From NCBI RefSeq assembly GCF_052425735.1, contig NC_135758.1, forward strand, positions 19,096,001 through 19,160,000: 64,000 bases of DNA. Reading direction: 5' to 3'. The notes under the pieces were generated by a model. It saw nothing but the letters and a program-made list of their open reading frames with translations. It ran no database searches and was not told where the DNA came from. This document shows, one piece after another, positions 1,580 to 62,842 of the stretch (its first letter is position 1; every line of letters begins with the position of its first letter). The DNA is from Oculina patagonica. Its lineage: Eukaryota. The translations under genes and the position numbers were made by a program.

Positions 1580-4500
1580 TCATAGGGAGGACTTCGGGGT
1601 AGGATGATCAACGACACCATCCTTTATCAGTTCTTGAATTTCTGTTTGTGTATACCCAATCTCTTGTAAAACCTCTATGGAATGTTCCCCAACTTCAGGT
1701 TGAGCCTTGGACTTACAGGACCCTGGTGTTCTAGACAGTTTTGGTGCTGGGGATGGTTCGTATGTGCCATCATTCAAAATAAATGCTTTCCTTTCTTCAT
1801 TGTGCGTGTGGCGAGGTGCCTCATCTGTTGTTAGTACTGGTGTGACACAAGCATCAAGATCTTTGAATGTTTCACTCCATTCTGACTGAGTCTTTATTGC
1901 AAATACTCTGGCGATTTCCTCTTTAGCTTTGGGCCACTGTTCTACATCAAGCTGGGATGGAAGTTTTCCTTCCAACTGAAGCCCTGAAGAAACAAGGATA
2001 GTGACATTTTGAGTGTCAAATGAGCCTAAATTTTGACCTTTTTTAACCGAAAAACAGTGTTCTGCAGAGCATTCTTTGCTTTGACAACCTGAATGGAAGT
2101 CATCTTCAGAGGTGTTGTCAGCCAATGTTGTCATTGAGGCTGATTGGTCAGTTTTGCTGTGATTTTATTGGCTGTAAAACTTGTGTAGAGTCTGCAACTT
2201 TAGTGAGTTTCGATTTGTCTATTGTTAGTCAAGTTAAGTCATTCTGTTAGCAGTCTATTATTTTGTTGGTTTTGAGTATGTGAATAGGTCATTGGTAAGG
2301 TGCCAGAAGTTGTTGACATCTTTTGATAGGCATTTGTTTCAAGTTTGTGTACCAGCTTTCTAGAGTCAGTCACTGCCGGAAAAATATAGTTAGTACTGTA
2401 GGTTTAGCATTCAGCCGACTCTCATTAAATTTTGTGGTTAGTAAGTTGATGGTGTTCAGAAATGTAATTGCTGACATCACCATTTCTAGTTGCTTGTTTG
2501 TGTTCAGTCAGTCTTGTCTCTCAGTATAGTCGTAAGGTATTTGGACAGTTGGTACACATGATAAGAGACCCACAAAACAAGACTATAGCTCACATGGGTA
2601 TACTAAAAAAACCGCCGCCTGGTTAGCTCAATTGGTAGAGTGCGGGACTGCTGTGTGGGAGGTCGTGGGTTCGAACCCCAGACCAAACCAACACTCAGGG
2701 TCTTTAAATAACTGAGGAGAATGTGCTGCCTTACATCTGCAAATGGTTAGACATTCTAGTCTTCTCAGAAAAGGACGATAAACCCTAGGTCCCGTCTCCT
2801 GTATCTTCAGTCTCAAAACAGGGGGCGTTAAATAACCCACACACTATTCGCAATGAGTAGGGCACAAAGTTCCCGGTGTTGTGGTCTGGCCTTTACGATT
2901 GTAACTGAAATATATTACAGTATGTGTAAAGCGCATTTGAACGTATGGAAAATGCGCTAAAGAATGCATTATCATTTTTATCATTATCATTATTATCGTT
3001 ATACCAGGTTTGTGCAGTTTTGGTCGTACGTAAAGTTTCAGTCGGGATGAACTTCAGATATTCCTGGGTGCAAACCATTTGCTCTATTATAGACAAAATT
3101 TATAACAAAAACAAACCTTCAATAAACTTTTGATAAAACTTGGGCTCTAAAGCACCTACAGCCATGAATCTTCCATCAGATGTTTGATATGTATCATAAA
3201 ATGGTGCACCTGAATCCAGCAAGTTCCTGCCTCGCTCAGAGTGTTGCCATACAAATCCCATGCCAAGAGTCTTGTAAATGAACGAGCCTAAGTAAGCTGT
3301 GCCATCAACCTTTAACAAAGGGAAATTGAGTCAACAAAAACAAAACAAAATTACAACTGCTATTGCTACTGTTAAGGATTGTATTTGCTTGTTTTGGTGG
3401 GACTAATATCTATGACATTGTTCTCAGTAAAGAGAACAAGCAACAAGTTTTTAACGACGTTTATTTGATTTGGGTGAAAGAAGGGTACTTGTCACAGTTT
3501 TTTTTTGTAGTGATCCAATCTCGTCCCCAGAGGCCGCGATCCTTCTCGTCTGTACCAAGGATCGGGACCTCTGGGCTATTCTGAAAGCCCGCCACAAAGG
3601 TGTCTGATTCTGATTGGCTGTTGAAAACTTGTTCGTTTCACCACAATCTCCGGTGCACATGCACAATCAAACTGGAACCAAGATTTCCTGGTTCCGGTTT
3701 TGGATTCGTCTAGAGCCATTGAGTTTCTCAACTGCTGGTCAAGGGAAACGCAGGCTCTGCGGACGAGATAGTAGTGAGATAGTAGTGATCAAGTCTCCCA
3801 TTAACTAACGTGGACAATGCTATCCTCCAGATAAATTGCTTTCCAATGAACAAGTATTGACAAAAAAATGTACTATCCATTGTTTAGTGATTTATCCGGG
3901 GGATACCATTATCCATCATTTCAACAACCAGTGCCTGTTCACAATAATCATCGACTGCAGGTCTGGAGAGATGGAGCTATCTCTTTAAAAATGCACTAAA
4001 TGAGAGTAACTTCAGTCTAATGCAATAATTGCATAATTTATTTAAAAAAATTGATTTACTGAAACCTTTCACAAAAAATTTTTAAAGTTCAATCCTTTAT
4101 ATTTTATTTTCATAGAGTAATTTACCATTGAAGAATCAACAACTTGTCCTTTTCCAGACTTGGTTCTCTCAAACAAGGCTAGCAAAATTCCAAAAGCACA
4201 AGTAAGACCTCCACCAGCAAAGTCTGCCAACAGGTTGATTGGTGGTGTTGGCTTTTGATCCTTACGTCCAAGCTTTGACAGCAAGCCACTGAGGGAAACA
4301 TAGTTGATATCATGGCCTGCTTTCTTGGCATAACAACCTGTCTGGCCATATCCTTTTGAAAAAACATCAAACAACTATTTTTTACTGGTCATGACTGTGA
4401 TTGAATTAACTTGAATTAACTTCAGTTCATTCTGAAAGTCTTTGATTTCCTTGTTTTGACCAATGTAAACAGTGTGGTTAGTCTGAAGAAAATAGTTAAC

Positions 4501-7500
4501 TGTTCAAATAGAGTCCTAAAGCCGTGACGTCACGTTACCATGGCGCTCAAGAATTCAGTTCTAAACAAACGCGCGTAGCGTGACCGATCTCATACAAAAT
4601 GTCTGCCTTGTCGATTGCATCGCTGATTTCTTTCTTCGCAGACGAACAAAAGTCCGTTAAAAAGGGAGAAAATCATTACAAATCTGGCCATGTGGAATCA
4701 TTCACATATAATCAGGGTATTTTACGAGGAGGTGTCCACGCAAGCATGAAAAACATCGTCTACAAAGTCACGGTAAGTGCGAAGATCGAGATAAGCCATT
4801 ATAAGCTTAATAGATGACAGCTGCAGATAAACAAATGTGCGTCTTGTTGTGACTTACTTAAAGGTTTCCTGAATGATATTTAAGAATACATCGTCTGATT
4901 CTTTCTTGGATATAATTCAACTGTAAAAATGTCCGTGTAAATATCGCCGATCGTACGCGTACTCTTTGTTGTGGCACTTCGTTTATATTGATGCAGACTA
5001 AACTAAGCTTATACTGGGCACATACACTGAGGACTCCAGCTTAAAAGACGTCTTTAAAATTTGACCTTTATGTTCTTATGCTTTTTCTTTTAATCCTGAT
5101 TTGCTAGATTTACTTGGACAACGAGAATGAAATCAGATCAAGCGAATGTGAATGTCCAAGGGGAAAGTTCAAGTGCAGCCATGCGGCTGCACTTTTTATT
5201 CATGGAATACACAACCTCAGCCGGAGAGATGTTGAGTGCCAGTGGAAAAAACGCAAATCCACCACACCACTCTCTTGGCAAGCCGTTGAAGAGATGTTTC
5301 CACCAGCAAAAAAGTATTCATGCCTGTCAAGGACACCTACTCAATCTGACCGGTCTGCCCTTTACAGAGACTTGCTTGAGTATGGGAGGTTTACTGGCCT
5401 TTGCTGGCTTATGAGCCCTGAACCAGCTACTGTCAGTAAGCTTCCAGTACCAACGATTGAGGATATTATCTACTCAGAGGAATTTCTTCATACACAAGGG
5501 TTTCAGCAACAAATTGACTGCTTGATTCGAAAGGCCAAGATTCCAGAGGAGTACATTCCAAGGATTAGTGAAATTACACTTGGACAAAGAAACAATCCCA
5601 CCTGGCATTTAACCAGAAGGGGCAGATTAACAGCAAGTAACTTTGGTTGTGTTTTGAAGGCCAAACGAGTCACCCCGTCTCTTGTTAAGCGTCTCCTTGG
5701 AGAGTATGATCTTTCGAAAGTAAAGGCTGTCCAATGGGGTGTGAACAATGAACAAGAAGCACTAAATGCATTCAAAAGACTGACAGGGAAAAATGTCCAG
5801 GAAACTGGCATTTGGTTGGATTCCTCAGGAATCCTTGGTGCCTCGCCTGATGGAATTGTAGATGATGAAACTGTTCTGGAAGCTAAATGCTTGTACACTG
5901 AGCGCAACCTAACAATCGAAGAGGCTGTCGCTACTTCGAAATCATTTTGTTTGGAAAAAGCACAGGATGGAAATGGATTTGCTCTGAAAAAGGACCATGT
6001 TTACTGGGACCAGGTGCAGGGTGAAATGTTCTTTACGCAGAGGAAATTTTGCTATTTTGTTGTGTGGACAACAAAGGATTTAGCAGTTGTTAAAATTAAG
6101 CGAGATGAAACCTGGGATGCAAACATCCCAATCTTGACTGAATTTCATTTAAAACACATTTTTCCAAGAATAGTGGAAGGAGAATTGTAAAAAATTATTT
6201 TGTTTTCAAGATGAAAATTTTTGCTTCAACATTCATTGACCAAATTAATTTCAGTTACATTGTAAACTACATTATTAAGTGACTGTATTCTTACTGAACC
6301 ATATTTATGTGGACACTTTATTTATTAAATTGTACTCACAGTTTAGTTAGATAATAATTAAGTGAAACTTAAGCTTGTTTTCACCCCTCTTTATTTGTTA
6401 TTACATGTACATATTTAAAAACAAACCAATAAAACAATAACATTTTTGTTTATAACTCCTTCTGACTGGCAATTGGTCCCACATTTTATAAGTATAATTA
6501 AGGTATCATCAGTCTACTACTTAAATTACTCAAAATCTGTCCCTTCACACCCCTCCTTGATGAGTGGAAATTGTAAATTTACAAGTCCAGCACATAACTG
6601 AAAAATCACATCAGCATAACATCTTAAATATGACGGGATGAAAGTTAATATCCTAAAATCCTTCAATCTTGCATTTGCTCTTTCCACGTGGATCCTTGCT
6701 CTGGCAATAGATTTTGTTGCCTTAGCCTCACTTTCCGTAAAAACACCTTTGTTCAAAAAGGGCGGTATGTTCAGAGACACTTCACGGGGCAAAATATCCT
6801 GAATAAGAAAGCCCTTGTCTGCCAGAATCATGTCCCCTGCTACAAGATGGTTCAACAAGCCTGACTGTTGAACTATGGCCTTGTCAGAAATTGAACCAGG
6901 GTAAAGTTTGCTTACAAATGCTATCACTGTATTTGGGGCAACCCCAACAATAACTTTAAAGGAGTTCTTACCCCTATAGCTTGAATAGGTAGCATTCTGT
7001 TGACTCATTAACCCCGGGGCTGCAACCTCCACATCAGTGCAGTCAATGACAATTCTACAGGAAGTAAACTGTGAAAAAGAGGATGGTGCACATAACATAT
7101 TTTTATCTCTTGAAGGAATGGTTGTCATGATGTCTTTAAACAAAATGGAATGTAAAACATGAATAAAAGTAGTAACAATATTAGCTATGGTTGACACACT
7201 GCAGCTAAATAGCTGGGCAAGGTGCAGATTGGTGTAATTCTGCCTTAGTTTCATTAAAGTGATAAAAATTTGGTCTTCAAAAGTAATGGATTCTACTTTC
7301 CAACCAGAAAAATAAACAATAGCATCTTTGAATCTCAAGGCATGAAGAACTACAATATTAAACACTTCTTTCGTTGGGAGCCCAGTTTCCATTCTAATAA
7401 CTTCTGCACTCAGTTCTGAAACAGTGTAGTGTTTTCGTTTGTAGCTTTCTTTCTCTTGCATGTTCTTAAGTTCCTCCTTGGCTTGATTTAACTCTGCCCC

Positions 7501-10084
7501 CAGTATTATTTCTTGTGTTGTGATGTTTTCTTTTTGTGTGTTATGAGACTGCTGTTCTGCTCCTGTGATTGCCTTGGCCACCATTTCTTGAAGGGTCTCC
7601 CTTTTTGCTGTTACTTTTTTCTTTTTCTTTGGTGGTCCTCCTTCAGCAGGAAAAAGCTTGTCTTGATTTCTCACGTAAATCGTTGGTCCATACGATTTAT
7701 TTCCATCCTGGAAGTGACAACTGCATACTCTGGTATGTTTGCTGGGCTCTCTGTCTTTCCTCCTGTTACAGATAACAAATAAAAAATAATAATTGCTTAA
7801 ACTGACTTACAAATATTAAAATAGTTATAAAGTTAAGCTCATAATTTACAAATTTGAACTTCAGTTAGAAATAATTTCAAATAAAAACAAACAACATTGC
7901 AATAGACACGCACCAAAATTACACGATAAGGTAAGTTATATTACGTTTAGAAAGTCTTTGTTTGAAAGAGAACGAAATAAAACACACTGTTTTATTAGTA
8001 TAAGCAAAATCAAAACAGATAATCACTCGTTATCTTTCGAATGCCGGGCAAAGGCGACAGGTTGAACACGCTGTAGTGATAAATAAGCTTATGGTGATCT
8101 CGATCGGGAAGACGACAAATTCAAAGACAAGGCGTAGAAACGGTTGTATTTTACGCAAATTTTGAGACGCTAAGATAGTTAAAAAGAAATTTCACAAACC
8201 TCAACAATCGAACCCATCGCCTGTATTCGTCTTTCTTTTTCTCCTTGCTTGGGAAACCGAAGAACTTGCACGTATGGCTCTCGGAATGATGATCGCAGTC
8301 GGGCGCGAAGCAGTGAACCATTTCGACCTTCTCGACCTTTCTAGAGTCACGTAATCTCTTACGTGATCTCAGAGGGATATCTTTAAGCTTTGCAATCGAA
8401 CCGTGGCGTTCTTTTGTGCGATCAGGGCGATTTGTTTCACGAAATACAAGCGAACAGAGGGAAGGCGTCTTTGCTTTGTTCGATAATTGGCGATTGTTTA
8501 GAACTGAATTTTTGAGCGTCATGGCAACGTGACGTCACACTTTAGGACTCTATGACTGGTAACAAAAACAACGCAAGTGTGAATTTATTTAGAGAAGTCA
8601 ATCATGGAGCAGAGATTCTCTTTATCCAGGGCCATCGCCAAACTTTTAACATAGTTGAAGCAAGATCTTGCAGGGGGGGGGGGGGGTCTAGGGGCATGCC
8701 CCCGAAAAATTTTGAAATCTAGAACCACTGAAAGGGGTTTCAACATTGTGCAGTTCCAGAAAATATCCTTACCAACCCCATAAAAGGTCATTGGAAATTC
8801 TGAGGGGGAGGGGCTGAACTAGAATTCCCAGAGGGGAGGGGTATTCAAACTAAAATCTTTCTGTGAGAGGAGTATGGACATTTTCTGGAACAAAACATTT
8901 TTCAAAAGTTATTTCTTGAGAGAAGTGAATCTTGTTCAACTGGGAATTATTTTTCCAACTTAATGTATTTTTTTTTAATTTTTGGTCGAAATCTAGAAGA
9001 GGCAAGTCCCAGGGGGGTCCTCAAAAAAGTTTTTTACGGGGAGGCTCCGCCCCAAGTTCTAACCCCTTACCCTTTTATATACCATTTTTGACAGAAATTG
9101 TACCCTTTCGTAACCTTTAACCGGCAAAGGTACCCCTCTCATATACCTGAGAGACATGGCATGGACTTAAAATAGGACCTTTTCTTGTCATTTTTATGTA
9201 GCGCTTAATAAATTAAAATAATACAGCCATAAATTGCGTCTGTTCGAAATATTTTAATTAAAGGCCCTTTTAAATAGCCAAACGACAGATTTCCATACCC
9301 TTTCATATACTTAAACTTGTGAAATCCCTACCCTTTTATATACCTGAAGCCTGAAAAAGGTACCCCTTTCGGGCGGAGCCTCCCCGTATAGGCCATTATA
9401 GGGAGTACCCCCCCCCCCCCCCCGGAGGCAAGTGCCTCGTCTTGCCTCTTGCTAGCTCTGGCCCTGCCCCTCCCCTCCACAAACACCATACTATCCCCCA
9501 CCCACTCCCAATCCAAGTTCAAGGCAAGGTTAATTTTGAGCAGATTTTTGGAAAAATTATCTTTAAGTATAAAATTATAAATCCTTACAAGCCTTATTAC
9601 TATAATTTATCACTTATATTACACTTTTGTTTCATATACTTAATTTTTAATTTGCTTAATTATAATAGGTAACACCATCTACAGATCTGTAAAGATCTGG
9701 AAAGAACTTAAGCGTAAGCTAACTTAATAAATTTTGTTCGCTTTAATAGTAAATACCTGTTAATCGAGCATAAACTAATCTTGGATTCTCTTTCATTAGT
9801 ATTTCAGGTCCTAGGCCCAATTTTTCCATCACTCCTGGTCTGAAAGGCTCAATCAAAACATCGGACTTTGAACACAGTTTTCGGACGATGGCAACTCCCT
9901 GGGGATTATGTAAGTCGACAGCGATGGACCTTTTTCCACGACCAAGTGTATCGGTAACGAACATAGTCTTCACTTTGTCTATTCGGGTAACTGCTGCTCC
10001 GAAATCTGCCAGAATCATCCCGCAAAATGGTGCGGGAGCAAGTCCAGCAAGCTCAACCACTCGAACGCCCGCCAGAGCCGCCAT
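1580..10084 (-). CDS. AMACR: Alpha-methylacyl-CoA racemase, 4 exons: complement(join(1580..1983,3117..3309,4126..4352,9757..10084)), ~383 aa
   Basis: CoA-transferase III motifs: [98 protein letters not shown] junctions keep frame. C-terminal -KSSL resembles a PTS1. Confidence 0.95.
2613..2892 (+). mobile_element. tRNA-derived SINE
   Basis: 5' tRNA-like head with A box (TAGCTCAATTGG) and B box (GGTTCGAACCC), followed by ~200 bp of non-tRNA body. Lies in an AMACR intron. Confidence 0.7.
4599..6190 (+). CDS. Transposon SWIM zinc finger + YqaJ-like (lambda-exonuclease family) protein, join(4599..4772,5108..6190), ~418 aa
   Basis: SWIM motif [12 protein letters not shown]. YqaJ motifs [41 protein letters not shown]. 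Phase-0 GT-AG intron. Confidence 0.85.
6526..8321 (-). CDS. THAP-domain DDE_Tnp_4-like transposase, complement(join(6526..7762,8200..8321)), ~452 aa
   Basis: [13 protein letters not shown]...W...RVCSCHF is reconstituted across a phase-2 intron. HTH LMKLRQN..LAQLF. Catalytic [26 protein letters not shown]. Confidence 0.88.
9010..9423. mobile_element. MITE-like dispersed repeat; same family in opposite orientation at ~59940-60362
   Basis: Subterminal inverted motif TACGGGGAGGCTCCGCCC / GGGCGGAGCCTCCCCGTA with poly-G/poly-C ends. Near-identical reverse-complement copy at ~60 kb. Confidence 0.75.
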
Positions 10085-10756: not shown

Positions 10757-12699
10757 TTTTTGAGCTAAAATTTCTCCCTCCTCCCTATTTTTTTAGCCAA
10801 AATTTTTCCCTCCTCCCTAATTTTTTTTGGCCATTTCTCCCTCCTCCCTATTCTGTACCTCCCCCCTCTTATGACACACTTTCGGTTTTGTGGTTAAGTT
10901 AGTTACTTGAATTCCGACCTATTAAAGCGGAATTATTTATTGGAGAAACTAAAGAAATATTCATTAATTTTATCCAAAAGAGGTTCTCCAGATGAATTTA
11001 ACCAAATTTAACTTTATTTAAGCAAGCTTGTTCAAAAACAAGATAACGCCATCGAGCCTGTGTAAGGATTTTGGAATAAACTACTAGTTTCATGATTATT
11101 ATTCAAACAGTTTTGGAGACATCTTTGAACACCCCGTGAGAAAAATCTCAGTTACCTCGCCCCAGTCCACGCACTAGCACTGATGTTTTGAAAGTTCTAA
11201 AATTTGCGGAAACTTGGTTTTAGAAGACGTCGGGAGCAAGAAATAATCATGAATTCCACGAGCAGTTTGCGCGATACGGATAGTTAAAACGCAGTGAGGT
11301 ATGGGGACAGATCAGTCCTTCAAGCCGGTCTCTATTTTCTCCGTTGAATATGTGGGCGAAAATCGAGAAAAAATTGAGAAAAAAAGTTTTTTTTCTCACG
11401 TTTCGCTTGCCGATTCACGAATCCGAGGCTGTGATTTATTATAGTTCAAGTATCTAGTGATGAGCACTGTACATTACCTCATACCTCTTGCTCATGCCCC
11501 GTCGGTGTCTGTAAGAAGTGCTTTCTATGCCATGGACACCCGTGGAGTCTCAGTGCGCACGAAAGCGTTCAGGCTGCGTTCGCCCATAGGTGTTAGAATA
11601 AACTAGAGACAAAACTAGCAGATGACATCATAAAAAGAGGATTTAAAGATTAACTCATGAGAAAACTCTAAGAAAGCCCGAAGCGTAGCAAAACTATGGC
11701 TTTCCTACCCTGCAAGCAGAGGGTGCTAGTAAAAAAGGGACTCTTTACTCTCTAATGTTCTTAAGAAGACTCTTGCAGGACTGGCAGGGTAAAAATCAAA
11801 GAAAAAAGGTGTTAGATAGAAAGAAGCTGTTGTGCTGCGTCGGGGGTTGATAATCGACTGGAAGTTTTTTTATTAAAGAAGAAGACGAAAAGAAAAAAAA
11901 TACAATATTGATAATACAAAGAAAAATTTACACAATTTCACTACATATAAGTACAAGTACAAAGTTGGTTTACAACATAATGTTCTAAATACAACTGGAA
12001 GTTGATAAAATGTGTTCAAATAGTTAAATTCTTTACTAGCCGGAGAAAATGCGTCCCTTGCAAGTGTTTGCTAGGTTTGCAGAAAGCTCATTATACAGTT
12101 TGGCCTGGGGGTATAAATTGGCGACTCCTGAAAACCTTTTTTTTTTGGCTTTCACCTATAAAAAAAAAAAATTCCGCCAGAAGTTCAGCGCAAAGAAAGC
12201 TCCCCCGTCCCTTTCTCTCCCCCCAGAGAAAAGTGTTTAGAGTTGTGGAGAGGGAGGTGGAAAGGAAAGTACAAGAGCGCGCGCTTTCTTTCCCCTCTCC
12301 CCAGCCTCCAAAGTGCCAGTGTCAAGGCAGCCTTTGCGAAGGAGAGAGTTCTCGGTCATTGTTTAGTGTAATATTATTTTCAGAATATTCGCTTTTTTAG
12401 AACCTTCGTTGTATTCAAAGTAATTCAGCCGTCGTTGTTACGACACCGGTGCTTGATAGTTTCGTTGTTTACTTCTCTTTTAGTTATCCTTTTATTTTAT
12501 TTTTTATCGCGATTTGTTTCTCGTGTTGTATCATTATTTATACCATGCCATAGAAAATACAGCCAATCAGAATACAGGAAAGCCGTTGTATATTCGACGG
12601 TATTCAACCCAACCTTCCCATCGTGCGCTGCGATTGTATTCTCGACGAAATTTAGTAAGTGTATTTTCTATGGCATGGTATAAAATAGTTACACAACAC

Positions 12700-45243: not shown

Positions 45244-46661
45244 ATGGCTAACACAATTCTGTGTATTGGCAGCGCGGAAGACCCGCATATTCAAGAGGTC
45301 GATAAACATGTGAAAGCAATAGACAGCAAGGCAAGAGTTGTGCTATTCAACCCTCTTTGTGGAAGCCATTTCATCGAAATCACCGCCGGAAATCTCTCAG
45401 AGCAAGGTCCTAGCTGTACTATTGTTGTGGATGACGAACGCATCAGTGCCGAATCGATCAGGTCTGTGTGGTATCGCTGGAAACCGGCCGTTCTTTCAGC
45501 AAATGAAGATCTCCAAGGTCTCATTGCCAAAGACTTCGCCTTAAAGGAGTGGAAATCGGTGATTCGTTCACTCGCGTCGTATCTGCCTCACGCGAGGTGG
45601 TTGAACCCGCTGGGGGCCTCGGAGCTGATAAACTGTAAACCGCATCAACTGAAGCTCGCGCAACAAGTTGGGCTGACTGTGCCACAGACCACCATCACAA
45701 ACAACCCAACAGCCGTGGAAAAAATCTTCCAGCAAGTGGATCACGGACGAGTGATATTCAAAAGCCTAACGCCTCTATTTGTGCCGCCAGATAAACTGCT
45801 ATACACAACAGAGATCACAAAAGAATTTCCATCCGTGTCCCGGGCAAGTGTAACACAGTGTCCAGCTATCTACCAGGAGCTGGTGGAAAGGAAATCAGAT
45901 TTGCGTATCACCGTCGTTGGTCGAGCAGTGTTTGTTGCCTGCATTGCTTCGCAGATACTTGATGAGAAGAAAGATCGCTTGGATTGGAGACGATGCCAGG
46001 AAAAGGACGAGATGTACAGTATAGCACAGGTATAATCATCTTATCACGGTTATAACACAGCATGTAGCTTTTAGGGACGGACCATTGAATTTTGAAAGGG
46101 GGGGGATTGGGCAATTACGAAAAAATTCTCGAACAAGGAAAGTAGGAGTAAAAAATCATGCAGAAGTAAGCACGGATTACAATTCAACCAAGTCCCTCTT
46201 TGTTAACATAGAGTTGGTAAAAGACTGAAATTCTTGCAAATATCAATGATCAAAAAAATCTTACTCCGGAGAAATTGGGCAACAACTCTACCCCAAAAAT
46301 CAAATGGTCCGTCCTTTACGGAGCTTTTAGGATCTATTGTTCCGTTGCTTATAGATGTTTAGCTGTTCGATTCCCCAGTCCCCACGAATTTGACTTCCTC
46401 GCATTTATTTCTTTCATTTTTTAACAGGTAACTGAGTCATTTAAAGAGCGCTTGCTAGAGTTCCACGAGAAAGCAGGCTTGGTTTTTGGCGCTTACGACT
46501 TCTTAGAGCGCGGTGATGACGTCATATTCCTCGAATGTAATCCCGGAGGAGCCTGGCTCTGGTTAGAAAACAGTCTTGGTCTTAAAGTGTGCGAACACGT
46601 TGCGCGATACCTTCTGGGTAAAGATGAAGCAAACTCTTCCAGAGCCACAAGCAGTGAATAA
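45244..46661 (+). CDS. ATP-grasp peptide ligase, RimK-superfamily MvdC/MvdD (graspetide synthetase)-like, join(45244..46029,46428..46661), ~339 aa
   Basis: Motifs [91 protein letters not shown]. Phase-0 intron CAG|gtataa...aacag|GTA joins ORFs 45244 and 46452 in frame. Confidence 0.9.
46073..46316. mobile_element. MITE in the ATP-grasp intron
   Basis: TIR AGGGACGGACCATT / AATGGTCCGTCCTT. Same family as 25044-25278. Confidence 0.7.
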
Positions 46662-47255
46662 ATGAATGAACTTAAGAGATCCAAATTTAAGACTGACATT
46701 ATTAGTTTCGGTTGTATAAAATAAACGAAAACAATTTATACGCGGGACTTCTGGTATGTAGACCACACTGTTATGACCCACATTTGAACATTTGACGTTC
46801 TTTATCTTTTTGTGAAATTTTGATTAAATCATTGTGATGTAGAGGTTTTATTTGAAACCGGTTTAAATGTGCGGAATAGTTTTAAGTAGCAAGACCTTGC
46901 TATCCCATCTCTGTAGAAGAACAACATGTTGCCAAAAGCAAAAGACAAAATAATAAAAAAACAGAAGATAGAGAAAAATGTTTGCAACTTAATTGCAACC
47001 TGTAGTATGTAGTTAAGTTACAGATCTTAATCGGTTAAACCTGAATAAACCTGTTTTTGCCGGCAGCTTTTGGTGAGTCAAAATGTGATTGGGCACGAAT
47101 TCTCGTCTGATGCAATCCCACAGTGATCTCTTTGTGAAAATGAACCAGAGATGAGTTTATACTTGTTGCACATGTGACACACATTTTTATTGGTTTATAA
47201 ACCTTTAACTGAACAGTAAGTGAGCGTTGGAGCGATTTTCCGTTCGCGAGTTCGC

Positions 47256-48335
47256 TTAAGCATCAACTTCTGAACAATGGGGTCCTTCTTCTGTACATCC
47301 GATCACTCCTGGAACAGTCATGGGCTCCACCAATGAGAAGGCAGCAGGGTATGTACGCACCTCGGCTGCGCATGTCATCGGCACTAAACAAATATCACAG
47401 CATGAGTAAATTATGACTGAACCCAATATCATATGCAGTGGATGGCTGCAATATTTAAATCAACTTTTCACCTTTTTAGTAACGGTGAACTAAAATTAAA
47501 AAAACTCACTGAAATGCAGTTAAAAGGGTTTAGGACAGTCAAAAACAACAAAAACAACTGATGACTCAAATTGCACACTTTTTCAAACAAACAAATGCCA
47601 TTGTTACAAGTTTAGCCGCGTCTTTGCATTCTTTGAGGAAAAAGTCCACAATGAGCCATAATCTAACTCTATAACTCCTGTTATTCCCTTGTTCACCTGT
47701 ACACCAGAAGAGAGCCAAAATGACTTGAATTGGTGTTCATTGTCATTTTTATTCGCTGTCTATACTGGCCGTAAAAAACCTTACAAATCCTTACATTTGT
47801 TGGCAAGATTTCCGCACAGGACCCTACATTAGTTATGCATACAATTTTCTGACTGATTCGTTCTTTTCATGATTGCTGTTTATGCATAGTGATAGTATGA
47901 AATAGTTGCATACATAATTAATGTAGGGTCCTGTGCGGAAATCTTTCCCATTTGTTCATTGTGGGCTTGGGGAACCTGTGCTTACATCAAGCGAAGCGAA
48001 ATAAACACTCGAAGTGGGAATATAATTTGTGACGTGATGCTGCAGTATGTAGAGTTTAAAACTAGAAAATAAACAACTATTAAACGAACATGTAACACAT
48101 ATGAATTGATCCATGTTTTATGTATAACTACGATGAATATTACCTTTGGTATTTTCTTTTGGATGTTTCTTCGTCTGAAGCGCTTTCTCTGCATTTTGGA
48201 GTACAATCTGCGAGAAGGAACACACCAGTGCGTAATGAACTCCACAGAAACAGCAATCCGTTAACTAAGCAAAAGTAACCTCGACAAAAATACAACAAAG
48301 CAAAAGTATTCACCTACCTCGCCTGAGGCAGACAT
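47256..48335 (-). CDS. Divergent putative precursor F, complement(join(47256..47383,48144..48207,48318..48335)): MSASGEIVLQNAEKALQTKKHPKENTKVPMTCAAEVRTYPAAFSLVEPMTVPGVIGCTEEGPHCSEVDA (69 aa)
   Basis: The terminal exon aligns with the other leaders (VPMTCAAEVRTYPAAFSLVEP vs VPLSCAAEMRALPAAFSLAEP) with the same phase-1 intron. The upstream exons splice in frame. Confidence 0.7.
47810..47941. repeat. Short inverted-repeat element in the precursor F intron
   Basis: TTCCGCACAGGACCCTACATTA / TAATGTAGGGTCCTGTGCGGAA. Confidence 0.7.
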
Positions 48336-50136
48336 TTTCGCAGTTGCAGCAAAACTTAACTCAGTTGCGGACACCAACAGAATATTTACTAAATGGTTCA
48401 TTAACTTTGGGTGAGTTCAGATATTTCATGCAAATGATATTACATGGTATTGTGACCAATCACATGCGAGCTATTGTTGTTGTGTCCGTCCTTGTTCTTT
48501 TCCATTTGAGTACCCCAAGAGACAGAGTTTATGGAGCAAAAAAGTTCAACAAACAAAATTGGAAAAAAAAATTGGAATTTTGATAGTATCAGTACAAAAC
48601 GCGCGAAATTAAAGTGAATCGTGATCAATAAATATTATATGTAAATTCAGTTTAAATTCAGTGTAACAACGTTGTCGGTATCTTTAGAATTTTCTTTTAA
48701 TTACGAGTGTTTGGCTTCGCATCGGAAAAAGTAATTGCATTCTTCTTGCGTTTGGAGTGACCAATTACATTCTAACTTATCAATAACACGTTAGTCTACT
48801 TTGTACGGGTTGTTTATTCAATACAGTGATCTTCAGTATCGTATTTCAGTAAGGTTTTCTAAAATATTTCGACTGCTAGAACTTTTTTTGTTATTTCAAA
48901 ATATGCCTTTTTCGAAGCGAAGCCATAACAAACTTTATTAAGTTTCTTTTAATTTCGTTTGATTTGAAAAGAATGTACATTGACATTTACAAAAGTAATT
49001 GTTATTTTATCTTGAGTATTGTAGAGTTGTACAATACGATTTGGAATTTATTTGCACAGCAGGTATTGCTGGTGACACCTTTGGTTTGGCCCGAAACTCG
49101 TAAACAACTTAGTATTAATATGTGGATGTGGGCGGAATAATGTTAAGCTAGGGTACAGTCTGTGTCCGAGCCAAGTGGCCCATACAGCCGGAGCTTATCC
49201 CGGTTTCTGTAGCATTAAGCGACTAGGAGTATTGCTATTCCCCCCTGGATGAGATGCTAGTCCATCGCATCGTCTCTTTAAAAATGCGCGTGCAAGATTT
49301 TAATAGCATTCAGAGAAGAGTTGTAATACCAGTGCTTTAATTTAGTAAACTTGTAGCTGAGGAGTAAACATATAAAAAAGAAAGCTGATTCCGTTGTTGC
49401 AGTGGGACTGCTTATCCCCGCTACAAACTGATCGACTGACAATAAACATCTCCTAGGATAATGGAAAACAATGACTGGTTTTCTCACAAAATAAGTCTTG
49501 AGGAACATGCGAAAAGTTTGTGGAAATGACTTCTTAACGGTCTTCTTTTCGGAAAAAAGCACTGGGGACTTGATTCCACCTAATGAAAGCTAGCGAAGTC
49601 CACCTCTTATAAAAGGGCCTTTTTTAAACACTGTTTTAAGGTGGCTCGATCGCGGGTTTTTGAGTGACGATGCCTTTCAACTTTGAGAAACATGTATGCC
49701 ACCGTAAACAAAACAACTGAAAATCGATAAATACAGCTGTACTAAGAAAGATGAAAGCTTCAAATGAGGTACGTTTAATTGAAATCGGAGTTACCATAGC
49801 AACATTATAACGTCACCACCCATTTTTACAATAGACCGATTTTCTTGCTATACAGGGAAACTTTTGTAAAAGGTCTATCTTGATCTTTGACTGGAGATGG
49901 TTTTTTCGAGGTTTGCAAAATTAGAAGAATTTCTATACGAGCGTTTTTAAAAAAATTTCGAATGAAGTTTTGAGCCACCTTTACTAGCTTTTTAAGCCGA
50001 ACAATTGATTGTTAAAGAGATAAATAGTCATTCGGGTTTACGCTTTAACAGTTTTATTTCATCGATTATAACGCCATTACATCTCATGGAATCACGATTA
50101 ATCAAGTTGATGCTGGCAAACATCTCGCTGGTCAAG

Positions 50137-51293
50137 TTAAGCGTCCCAATCACTGTAGGAATTGAGATTCATCCCCATGGTGTAAGAGGCTGTTGGCATT
50201 TGATTGCCGGGGTCCTTTATCGGCTCAGCCAATGAGAAGGCAGCTGGTAAGGCCCGCATCTCGGCAGCACAGGACAGCGGAACTGAAAATAAACAATGCG
50301 AAAAATACGTGGATAAGAACATCCAATTTCCATATATGGGGAGATTAAGGGCTGGATCGAATGACCTTTATAACAGAAAAAAACCAAACTGGCCAGCCAA
50401 AGCAAAACGCAAAAATACAATGTAAACGCTTAAACAGAAATATAAATTTTTAGGTACGTGGAAAAGACAGCTTAAATGCTAAAGGCGAGAGCTTGATCAA
50501 GGAAACTTTTTGTTGACAAATGCTATTTTACATATCCAAATCACTACTAACAATCTTCTAGCTCTTAGCGACATAAACTGTTTTCAAAAGGATCTTTTCA
50601 GAGAAAGCCAAAGTTGAAACAGCGACGTTTCTAAAATGAAGGATCATATGCGTGACTCAATTGCACTCTTTTAATTCTATAAGAATTTATTTTACAAGAA
50701 TATCGAGGCTGAAATTTGCGAAATTTAAAGAACATTTTAAGAATAAACCCGAGGCTAAGATTTTGAAAAGAATATAATTTTGTGTGTTGAAAATTTGTAA
50801 GAGAATATAAATATATATGTTTTTTCTAATACCTATAGAATTCGTCCTTTTTCAAAACGGCAAAACTAGACAAATGCTGATGCTATTGACAGCTCGATGA
50901 ACGATACATGTATAACATATGTATGGCATACAGCACAAGCAAAAAATGTTATACGCTATAATCTAAGAATATTCACAAGAATATTCAGCTTGGGTCGGGA
51001 GAAACAATATTCTTATACAAAAAGAGTGTAGTTTTTTTTAACTCACAATTGAAAACACAATATAGCTAATTTTTCAAAGAATTGGCATGTTCACTTTTAG
51101 GAGACTTGTTGTTCTTATAAAACATTTTATCTTCAGGGACTATTCTGGTTTAATCGTGCTAGAAATCTCTCCAAAGTGCTGCATTAAGTTTGCTGTGTTA
51201 GAAAATTAGAACAAAATAATGAGTTTTTTTGATACCTGAAGGTTTTTCTTTTGGACCATCGCGTTTCTCAGGGACAGACTTGATAGCTTCCAT
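50137..51293 (-). CDS. Putative precursor B, complement(join(50137..50282,51236..51293)): MEAIKSVPEKRDGPKEKPSVPLSCAAEMRALPAAFSLAEPIKDPGNQMPTASYTMGMNLNSYSDWDA (67 aa)
   Basis: Same two-coding-exon structure as A. Canonical splice sites. Upstream non-coding exon donor at ~51390. Confidence 0.82.
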
Positions 51294-51516
51294 CTACCAA
51301 ACGAAATGCTCTCGTTAATTTGCATTAATCCAGCATTTTTACCTAAATAACGGCGGAAAACATACAAAACAGAGATAAAGCCTCACTTACCTCGATTTTA
51401 CTTGATTTTTTCCTTCGGAGACTTCGGGGGTACAAGTATCCTTTTCATCTCGCCAGAATATTACACACCCAAATTGTTGAAAGCGTTATAGTTATCTCAT
51501 TAAGTCGTGGGAATCT

Positions 51517-61893: not shown

Positions 61894-62842
61894 TTATGCG
61901 TCCCGATCACCGAAGGAGTTGGCATGACATATATCTGTGTAAGTGTTCGTCGGAGGCATCTGTTTACCAAAGTCGATCGGCTCAGCCAAATAGAAGGCAG
62001 CTGGTAAGGCCCGCATCTCGGCAGCCAAATAGAAGGCAGCTGGTAAGGCCCGCATCTCGGCAGCACAGGACAGCGGAACTGCAAACAAACAATATAGAGA
62101 TATGTATACTGGCTAAATAGAAAGCTGGAATGAATGGTGCGACTAGTTATAACAGCCAAACGCTTCCCCAAAGAAGAATGGAACTTGAACCGACCCATAA
62201 ACACGCGCACATGAAGTCAGAACAAACAATAAACACGGGCCTTACGTGCACCCATGCACGAAGAGGAGTAAGTAAGTAAGTACATCAACAAATAATAAAG
62301 GCAGTTAGCAACTAAAGGTGACTTTATTTTTTCTTTACCAAATGCTATTTTACATATCTAAATCGCTATAACTGCTATAAATCTTGCAGCGAAAAAATCT
62401 GCTTACATGAGTATCTTTTGGAGAATCTGCTTACTGAAGCATCTTTTAGAAAACTTGATCACTGAAAATTCTCTTTGAGAATACCTAAACTGAACTGAAA
62501 GCCTTTAAGGGGAACATTAATACGACGAAACAGCGTCGTAAAATGTAAGATAAAATAGGTTTCTCTGTTCGTGAGTTTCAGAGCTCACTCCTGTAAACAA
62601 AATATCTAATTCGATTTCAAGGAATTGGCAGGTTTAGTTCTGGGAAAGGATGTCGTTGTTTTCATGAAATATGTTAAATTTTAGGCACTATTTTGGTTTG
62701 ATCGTGCAAAAGATCTCCCAAGAACACTGCAATGAATTTTCTGTGTTAAAGAATTCGAACAAAATAATGAGTTTTTTTTTATACCTGAAGGTTTTTCCTT
62801 TGGACCATCGCGTTTCTCAGGGACAGACTTGATAGCTTCCAT
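61894..62842 (-). CDS. Putative precursor D, complement(join(61894..62078,62785..62842)): MEAIKSVPEKRDGPKEKPSVPLSCAAEMRALPAAFYLAAEMRALPAAFYLAEPIDFGKQMPPTNTYTDICHANSFGDRDA (80 aa)
   Basis: Same structure as the other copies, with an in-frame 39-bp tandem duplication in the leader. Confidence 0.8.

Follow-up and report, generated by a model that had tools for sequence, protein, structure and literature searches.

A spliced precursor gene beside a coral ATP-grasp ligase and its possible place in an animal graspetide pathway

A stretch of 64,000 nucleotides of intron-bearing eukaryotic DNA from the coral Oculina patagonica (contig NC_135758.1, positions 19,096,001 to 19,160,000; hereafter the window, numbered from its first letter) contains an ATP-grasp ligase gene among several small precursor genes. 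One of these, gene F (minus strand, 47256-48335), diverges from the others, which we call canonical. The original prediction described F as a three-exon precursor, possibly an older paralog, with its own Cys-paired core. Is F a working gene, and is its peptide a substrate of the ligase beside it? The first question can be answered plainly: F is a functional, spliced, polyadenylated coral nuclear gene. For the second, the sequences compared here make it reasonably probable that F encodes a functional precursor, guided by its leader to the adjacent ligase and given the ring chemistry proposed below.

F consists of three exons with an intact open reading frame (ORF), intact splice sites and an intact start codon, all on the minus strand. 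The coding part of exon 1 (48318..48335) is ATG plus five codons, ATG TCT GCC TCA GGC GAG (MSASGE), followed by the donor GTAGGT of a 110-nt, phase 0, GT..AG intron (48208..48317). Exon 2 (48144..48207; 64 nt, acceptor CAG, donor GTAATA) has ATT as its first codon, encodes IVLQNAEKALQTKKHPKENTK plus the first base of a Val codon, and ends in phase 1; it is the variable N-terminal part of the leader. Intron 2 (47384..48143; 760 nt, GT..AG) is in phase 1 and leads into exon 3 (47256..47383; 128 nt, acceptor TAG, stop TAA). Exon 3 holds the conserved leader part, (V)PMTCAAEVRTYPAAFSLVEP (47322..47383), supported by an alignment of 20 exon-3 peptides and by invariant columns in an F-type alignment, and the 21-residue core, MTVPGVIGCTEEGPHCSEVDA (47259..47321), with Thr2, Cys9, Thr10, Cys16, Ser17, Glu18 and Asp20. 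The stop codon (47256-47258) and 3' untranslated region (UTR) together span 47118..47258, with an AATAAA at 47186-47191. The 69-residue product thus opens with a stretch of variable sequence at the N-terminus, followed by the leader segment PMTCAAEVRTYPAAFSLVEP and the core MTVPGVIGCTEEGPHCSEVDA. The NCBI hypothetical protein ACROYT_G001673 (Oculina patagonica) is 100% identical to it over its full length, so the hand-built gene model of the original prediction agrees with one annotated independently.

Two other start sites were considered and rejected. An upstream in-frame ATG (48401) would prepend 22 hydrophobic, signal-peptide-like residues, MNHLVNILLVSATELSFAATAK (48336-48401, minus strand). 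As a main product or signal peptide this extension was set aside, since it is unconserved and only the longest 5' ends (48412) take in its ATG, which lies 11 nt from them; Desmophyllum has in-frame stops at the equivalent site. An ATG within exon 2, in frame +1, reaches a stop two codons into exon 3.

To place these boundaries on transcripts, four public RNA runs (X1, X2, X4 and X23, the last recorded as polyA RNA) were mapped onto window 45450-51440. Both junctions of the predicted gene, for which reverse transcription PCR had been suggested, are used in these data. The joint 47383->48144 (760 nt skipped; CT..AC, that is GT..AG on the minus strand) is carried by a single contig in X2, another in X4, and 19 raw polyA reads of X23 with 9 different starts. 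The joint 48207->48318 (110 nt skipped) is found in an X4 contig and 7 raw X23 reads with 3 starts. The splicing evidence for F comes from three studies, under two organism labels. Organism B (X4) is near-identical to the window, and organism A (X1 and X2) departs from it at about 3% of ligase positions; on that basis, at least two closely related taxa splice F. Among the listed RNA differences, the sole coding one in F is 47318 T>A in X2, which changes core Thr2 to Ser; two X23 reads covering 47318 retain Thr2.

Over F the X23 reads map to the minus strand, over the ligase 3' UTR to the plus strand, and they therefore represent the sense strand of both genes. Loose ends starting with a C run at 48390, 48394 and 48412 are template-switch-like and place the 5' ends of F 55-77 nt upstream of its ATG, with a 5' UTR extending to about 48390-48412. 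F contigs end at 47165 (X4) and 47118 (X2), both downstream of the AATAAA, and ligase transcripts end at about 47059-47064. By these mapped ends, the two convergent transcripts are at least 54 nt apart and do not overlap. Spliced polyA reads of F outnumber those of the ligase in X23. Contig depth of F in X4 is about two orders of magnitude under that of the canonical copies, depth being a poor measure of expression.

In X1, exons 1 and 2 of F are uncovered and the form seen is mainly unspliced. A 665-nt X1 contig (depth 95; 47198-47949, minus strand) runs unspliced from the 3' UTR through the exon-3 acceptor to about 47793 and then jumps an inverted repeat, which suggests either that there is an alternative start in intron 2 or that the intron is strongly retained. 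An in-frame ATG within intron 2 would yield MILGSVIIYSCCDICLVPMTCAAE... The inverted repeat has 43-nt arms (47802-47844 and 47906-47948) that are 91% complementary around a 61-nt loop, and is possibly a small hairpin transposon; X4 contig depth is elevated over it, as for a dispersed repeat.

The neighbouring ligase lies on the plus strand. Its exon 1 (45244..46029, 262 codons) matches TIGR04185 (MvdC, 5e-33), TIGR04187 (6e-30) and TIGR04184 (MvdD, 1e-27), and its exon 2 (46428..46661) adds 77 codons and the stop; the spliced joint skips 398 nt in X1, X2 and X4. Scores fall below the equivalog cut-offs of all three models, as for a distant member, and a PF21068 pre-ATP-grasp domain match lies under Pfam's cut-off. 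It is single-copy in the 529-Mb Oculina assembly and the only MvdC/MvdD-type ATP-grasp ligase there. Homologs 52-92% identical are present in Acropora, Porites and an Actinostola-labelled assembly, and one of 41% in Actinia; bacterial relatives reach at most 36%. F had been placed about 600 bp from the ligase and convergent with it, and the distance from stop to stop (ligase stop at 46661) is 594 bp, with the genes tail-to-tail.

F is single-copy in the Oculina genome, amid seven canonical paralogs. Exon 3 of the canonical copies ends near 40.7k, 50.1k, 55.2k, 61.9k, 64.0k, 68.4k and 74.4k in window coordinates, and all precursors are on the minus strand. The nearest has its exon 3 at 50137..50282 (core IKDPGNQMPTASYTMGMNLNSYSDWDA; RNA joint 50282->51236). 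The neighbours of F are the ligase, other precursors and Asp/Arg-hydroxylase-like genes; F is partnered with the ligase, and the canonical copies with a hydroxylase-like gene. A radical-SAM/SPASM gene, or one like it, was not seen next to F.

What F shares with its paralogs, and what it does not, bears directly on how its peptide might be used. F exon 3 matches the 55.2k canonical copy with a blastn E of 5e-10, far beyond chance. Besides their strand, F and the canonical precursors have in common the phase-1 intron before exon 3, bearing out the prediction of a retained intron phase, the leader core [LM][ST]CAAE.R..PAAF[SY]L.EP, a post-leader P-G and an S-[DE]-x-D-A end. The alignment of 20 exon-3 peptides, from at least seven sources, narrows the constrained leader to [LM][ST]CAA[EK]..R..P[AV]AF[SY]L.E, followed by divergent cores. 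F had been expected to pinpoint such residues, and it does; the motif first proposed, CAAE.R..PAAFSL.EP, is shared with the canonical copies; its last P is unconserved, being T, S, K or V elsewhere, and the PKE motif once listed beside it lies in a stretch of the leader that is poorly conserved in other species. The two Cys and the acidic end ascribed to the core are both there, the latter as S-[DE]-x-D-A across the alignment.

The differences are equally clear. F starts at an ATG in exon 1, whereas the canonical copies start at an ATG that lies at the first base of exon 2 (MEAIKSVPEKRDGPKEKPS). The sole recognisable canonical exon 1 in Oculina (43.6k) reads TTG TCT GCA TCC AGC GAG, and is untranslated because TTG replaces ATG. 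Within the leader, F has V-R-T-Y and L-V-E where canonical copies have M-R-A-L and L-A-E. The F core is 21 residues against 26-27 in canonical copies and is without the QMPT.SYT block; its position 2 is Thr rather than Lys. Unlike canonical cores, it has Cys9 and Cys16 around a Gly-Pro-His turn. The candidate nucleophiles Thr2, Thr10 and Ser17 lie upstream of the acceptors Glu11, Glu12, Glu18 and Asp20. Among the canonical copies, the one at 62.0k (61900-62090, minus strand) has an internally duplicated leader segment, AEMRALPAAFYLA, and a Cys-His in its core.

Genes of the same kind occur in other corals, with intact frames; the frame disruption that had been named as a refutation was not seen in these orthologs. 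The signature of such F-type genes is an MSAS start in exon 1, a leader RT.PAAFSLVE and a core MTVP..C[TS]..GPH..C with an acidic tail. Desmophyllum pertusum, placed by NCBI in another coral genus, has an annotated 73-aa protein (P0003) 66% identical to F and three more F-type genes within 20.9 kb, four in total. They read MSASSE in exon 1, FVPQNAEK... in the exon homologous to exon 2, and PMTCAAE..T.PAAFSLVETMTVPRV.. in exon 3, with cores such as MTVPRVTRCSVKGPHAYCLKDDDDEI. A coral-like metagenome scaffold from ENA (L002) has an exon-3 core that differs from that of F by P4Q and G5E only; its last 14 core codons (GCTEEGPHCSEVDA, 42 nt) are nucleotide-identical, while the adjacent intron and 3' UTR are 78-83% identical, with indels. 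Across F-type cores the conserved residues are Thr/Ser2, Cys9, Thr/Ser10, Gly13, His15, usually a second Cys, and at least two C-terminal acids. Both Cys9 and Cys16 are retained in L002 and in three of the four Desmophyllum copies (spacing 6 or 8), the second Cys being missing from the fourth.

At the level of the leader the type reaches further. In the Actinostola-labelled assembly (L015), the ligase is followed by a convergent canonical-type precursor (12040-12183), and a second paralog upstream of the ligase (8893-9491) has an MSASIK exon 1 and the F-like leader EVLRTFPAAFSLVE. The canonical-type core there, LKDPNTQMPTASYTFGMGVNAFSDWDW, is about 79% identical to the Oculina canonical copies, unexpectedly high if this assembly truly comes from a sea anemone. 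A transcript of another coral (L017, encoding P0097) maps to genome L013 as three exons, with an MSLSGK exon 1 (ATG plus five codons) and a phase-1 second intron; it combines the F-like leader CAAEVRTLPAAFSLVET with a canonical-like core. Within 10 kb of the ligase in L013 no other precursor was seen, and since the sole candidate there carries CAAEVRTLPAAFSLVET, the F-like leader type would be the ligase-paired one in that coral. Taken together, these comparisons show F as having kept the ancestral architecture and leader type, with the Oculina canonical copies derived, and they place the origin of the F-type core before the Oculina/Desmophyllum split. F is the only Oculina copy of this second, ancient precursor class, in keeping with its earlier description as an older paralog.

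A profile search of 1.84 billion representatives returned only three F-type entries and a few canonical-type precursors, besides the long proteins P0095, P0096, P0098 and P0099, and a second homolog search with the 40-aa exon-3 product returned nothing beyond P0001 and P0002. An exact 20-nt F-type leader pattern had one match in JGI metagenome contigs, in a contig with neither precursor motif nor similarity to the window, and the protein atlas gave sub-threshold bacterial hypothetical clusters only.

Is the peptide then a substrate of the ligase? In Oculina, two close relatives, Porites, the Actinostola-labelled assembly and Desmophyllum, precursors adjoin the ligase or what is left of it. This conserved association across several hexacorals is our main argument for reading the peptide family and the ligase as an enzyme-substrate system; the shared leader, and cores in which hydroxyl or amino nucleophiles are followed by acidic residues, support it further. 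We propose that the leader segment TCAAE.R..PAAFSL.E would dock the F peptide on the ligase, which with ATP would activate the C-terminal acidic side chains of Glu18 and Asp20. These would be joined to the hydroxyls of Thr/Ser2 and Thr/Ser10, giving two omega-ester rings. Thr2 occupies the site of the canonical Lys, so the nucleophile position would be retained and the bond would change from amide to ester; a Lys/Thr-Ser swap that keeps a nucleophile is what one expects if the ligase uses this position. Cys9 and Cys16, which flank the Gly-Pro-His turn, may staple the same hairpin by a disulfide after exit from the reducing cytosol, and the leader would then be removed by a protease.

A complex prediction bears on the docking step. 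For F with the ligase, the latter given as its two exon products, the score was 0.52 (runs 0.46-0.54), and the three controls stood at 0.00; partner pLDDT (a per-residue model confidence) was at least 43 and run agreement at least 43%. Of 78 solved complexes 51 reached the mark used, as did 2 of 108 mismatched pairs. Scores up to 0.60, however, comprise only 5 of the 78 solved complexes and all 4 passing mismatches, so that a pass in this band is more often wrong than right, save for a guess that was probable beforehand, and a three-chain job with the ligase split in two departs from the calibration. The prediction rates as weak support for a pairing of F and ligase.

Several further observations weigh against this proposal. 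The formation of rings and their topology, the disulfide and the removal of the leader are all inferred. The N-terminus of F (MSASGEIVLQNAEK...) is hydrophilic and, as read from sequence, has no conserved signal peptide; because of this the peptide would need to leave the cytosol before the disulfide could form, and an enzyme-independent disulfide is uncertain. In favour of function, a ratio of nonsynonymous to synonymous substitution rates of about 0.33-0.39 fits purifying selection, but this is a rough estimate over short stretches with 6-8 changes per class. Searches of Pfam and NCBIfam with P0001, P0003 and P0097, at E up to 10, gave no relevant match and no curated graspetide precursor model.

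The genomic context in two relatives also counts against it. In the 20.9 kb of Desmophyllum, the four intact F-type genes sit beside broken ligase sequence, with stop codons, frameshifts, an insertion and a missing N-terminus; these fragments (L001, MU825415.1, 7860-8319, 11478-12145 and 18418-18537) are interleaved with the F-type genes. No intact ligase ORF was found in that 20.9 kb, nor a Desmophyllum-named ligase among the homologs, although an intact ligase may lie elsewhere in the genome. If Desmophyllum is truly without the enzyme, its F-type peptides have a ligase-independent role. In a close Oculina relative whose ligase is 92% identical, no F was seen within 10 kb on either side of the ligase, and a canonical precursor lies about 570 bp downstream of the ligase in place of F. 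Two other features were noted: in L001 a canonical-type exon 3 at about 7740 is interrupted by a stop, and in a close Oculina relative (L012, 1-281 and 10001-11390) at least two ligase copies are arranged in tandem modules that also hold canonical precursors and Asp/Arg-hydroxylase-like genes.

The four intact Desmophyllum genes beside broken ligase sequence and the missing F of the close relative speak for the most serious alternative, that F-type peptides are expressed and conserved yet stay uncyclised, either as linear or disulfide-only peptides or as competitors or regulators that carry the leader and sit on the ligase without being turned over. The weak complex prediction and a core six residues shorter than the canonical one, without QMPT.SYT, also fit. 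However, F retains the full leader conserved in canonical copies, together with hydroxyls at core positions 2 and 10 and the S-[DE]-x-D-A acidic C-terminus. The convergence of F with ligase sequence recurs in Desmophyllum, albeit with fragments, and in another coral no leader but the F-like one was seen beside the ligase; the limited Desmophyllum coverage also tempers the argument from the missing enzyme. We regard an uncyclised F as fairly improbable, though deserving of attention.

A second alternative keeps the ligase and changes the chemistry of the cysteines. They could be reactive residues that form a thioester (thiolactone) through the ATP-grasp enzyme, or a thioether through an unlinked enzyme, instead of a disulfide. 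Cys9 stands directly before Thr/Ser10 and Cys16 two residues before Glu18, a layout, C[TS]...GPH...C.(.)[DE], that is also found in Desmophyllum, and the F peptide is apparently cytosolic, where disulfides are disfavoured. Conserved Cys are known from ester-forming bacterial graspetide cores, where they go with radical-SAM/SPASM enzymes encoded alongside and have been proposed as thioether sulfur donors (Makarova et al. 2022, PMC8939145). Those precursors share with F the presence of Cys within cores of ester residues, but F lacks a neighbouring gene of the radical-SAM/SPASM kind, and one Desmophyllum copy is missing the second Cys, which makes reactive cysteines unlikely. A thioester made by an ATP-grasp enzyme is not known as a graspetide linkage.

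The weakest alternative, that F is a decaying, transcribed but functionless relic of a precursor duplicate, draws on its being the sole divergent copy in the array, its low X4 contig depth (a poor measure), its absence from the syntenic site of the close relative and the mainly unspliced form in X1, but we consider it very unlikely given the intact frame, splice sites and start codon, the intact-frame orthologs including four in Desmophyllum, the 42 core nucleotides identical to L002 between diverged flanks with indels, and the spliced polyA reads in excess of those of the ligase. A pseudogene was accordingly rejected on expression and conservation.

How does a ligase-modified F compare with known peptide systems? 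By its enzyme type and precursor layout, the F system would resemble a bacterial graspetide system that falls outside the curated precursor families. Bacterial graspetides (microviridins; MdnB/MdnC, that is MvdC/MvdD-type) likewise have a small precursor, its leader conserved and its C-terminal core variable and rich in Thr/Ser and Asp/Glu, encoded beside an ATP-grasp enzyme of the TIGR04185/TIGR04187/TIGR04184 type, with several precursors per ligase. F differs in being a monocistronic, three-exon animal nuclear gene with a polyA tail, in lying outside known precursor models and in having a conserved Cys pair in its core, and its cross-links are proposed. The microviridin leader motif is PFFARFL, unlike the CAAE.R..PAAFSL.E of F. 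In the searchable literature, graspetides are described from bacteria and archaea only, and no publication on such a pathway in cnidarians turned up; where coral ATP-grasp genes are discussed there, they belong to mycosporine biosynthesis.

The nearest animal precedent for a peptide that combines cysteines with an ester is provided by the stryphnines, sponge knottins with disulfides and one chemically proven Ser-Glu side-chain ester (PMC13418204). No grasp enzyme was found in the transcriptome of that sponge, and autocatalysis was considered (PMC13418204). Like F, they are ribosomal peptides of an early-branching marine animal, with Cys and a Ser/Thr-Glu/Asp ester that is real there and proposed for F. 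The two have no sequence similarity, and F, with two core Cys, is not a knottin; the enzyme gene is adjacent in F, whereas the chemistry is proven in stryphnines.

Two side observations remain. A bacterial-type locus (L018) has an 80-aa ORF (3139-3381, plus strand) ending YDTKDQYTDDSDTV, two genes upstream of P0081, the nearest bacterial-type ligase homolog (33%, metagenomic); this ORF, with a loosely similar RAP.hydrophobic.IAQ segment, is a plausible graspetide precursor. Within the window, an element at 49157-49269 has contig depths of 2,400-8,800 in all three Logan runs with many different flanks and is a dispersed transcribed repeat without an Rfam match; an Rfam search of window 46600-50200 gave no RNA family.

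A bolder reading, which we hold only tentatively, is that F-type genes form a second, ancient class of animal-encoded graspetides, in which a horizontally acquired ligase installs Thr/Ser-Glu/Asp esters on a hairpin stapled by Cys, through a disulfide or, more radically, a thioester; such a coral-made hybrid macrocycle would be new for graspetides. If the pairing of F and ligase is true, this array would locate a complete enzyme-plus-substrate pathway in an animal genome, and F would make it a pathway with at least two old substrate classes under one ligase. Comparison of the classes points to the TCAAE...PAAFSL.E leader, an acidic tail and a nucleophile at position 2 of the core as probable requirements of the enzyme, leaving the rest free to vary. 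The core of F, compact at 21 residues, would be suited to a direct test with the ligase, and its ancestral architecture may help to reconstruct how a bacterial cluster became a set of intron-bearing animal genes.

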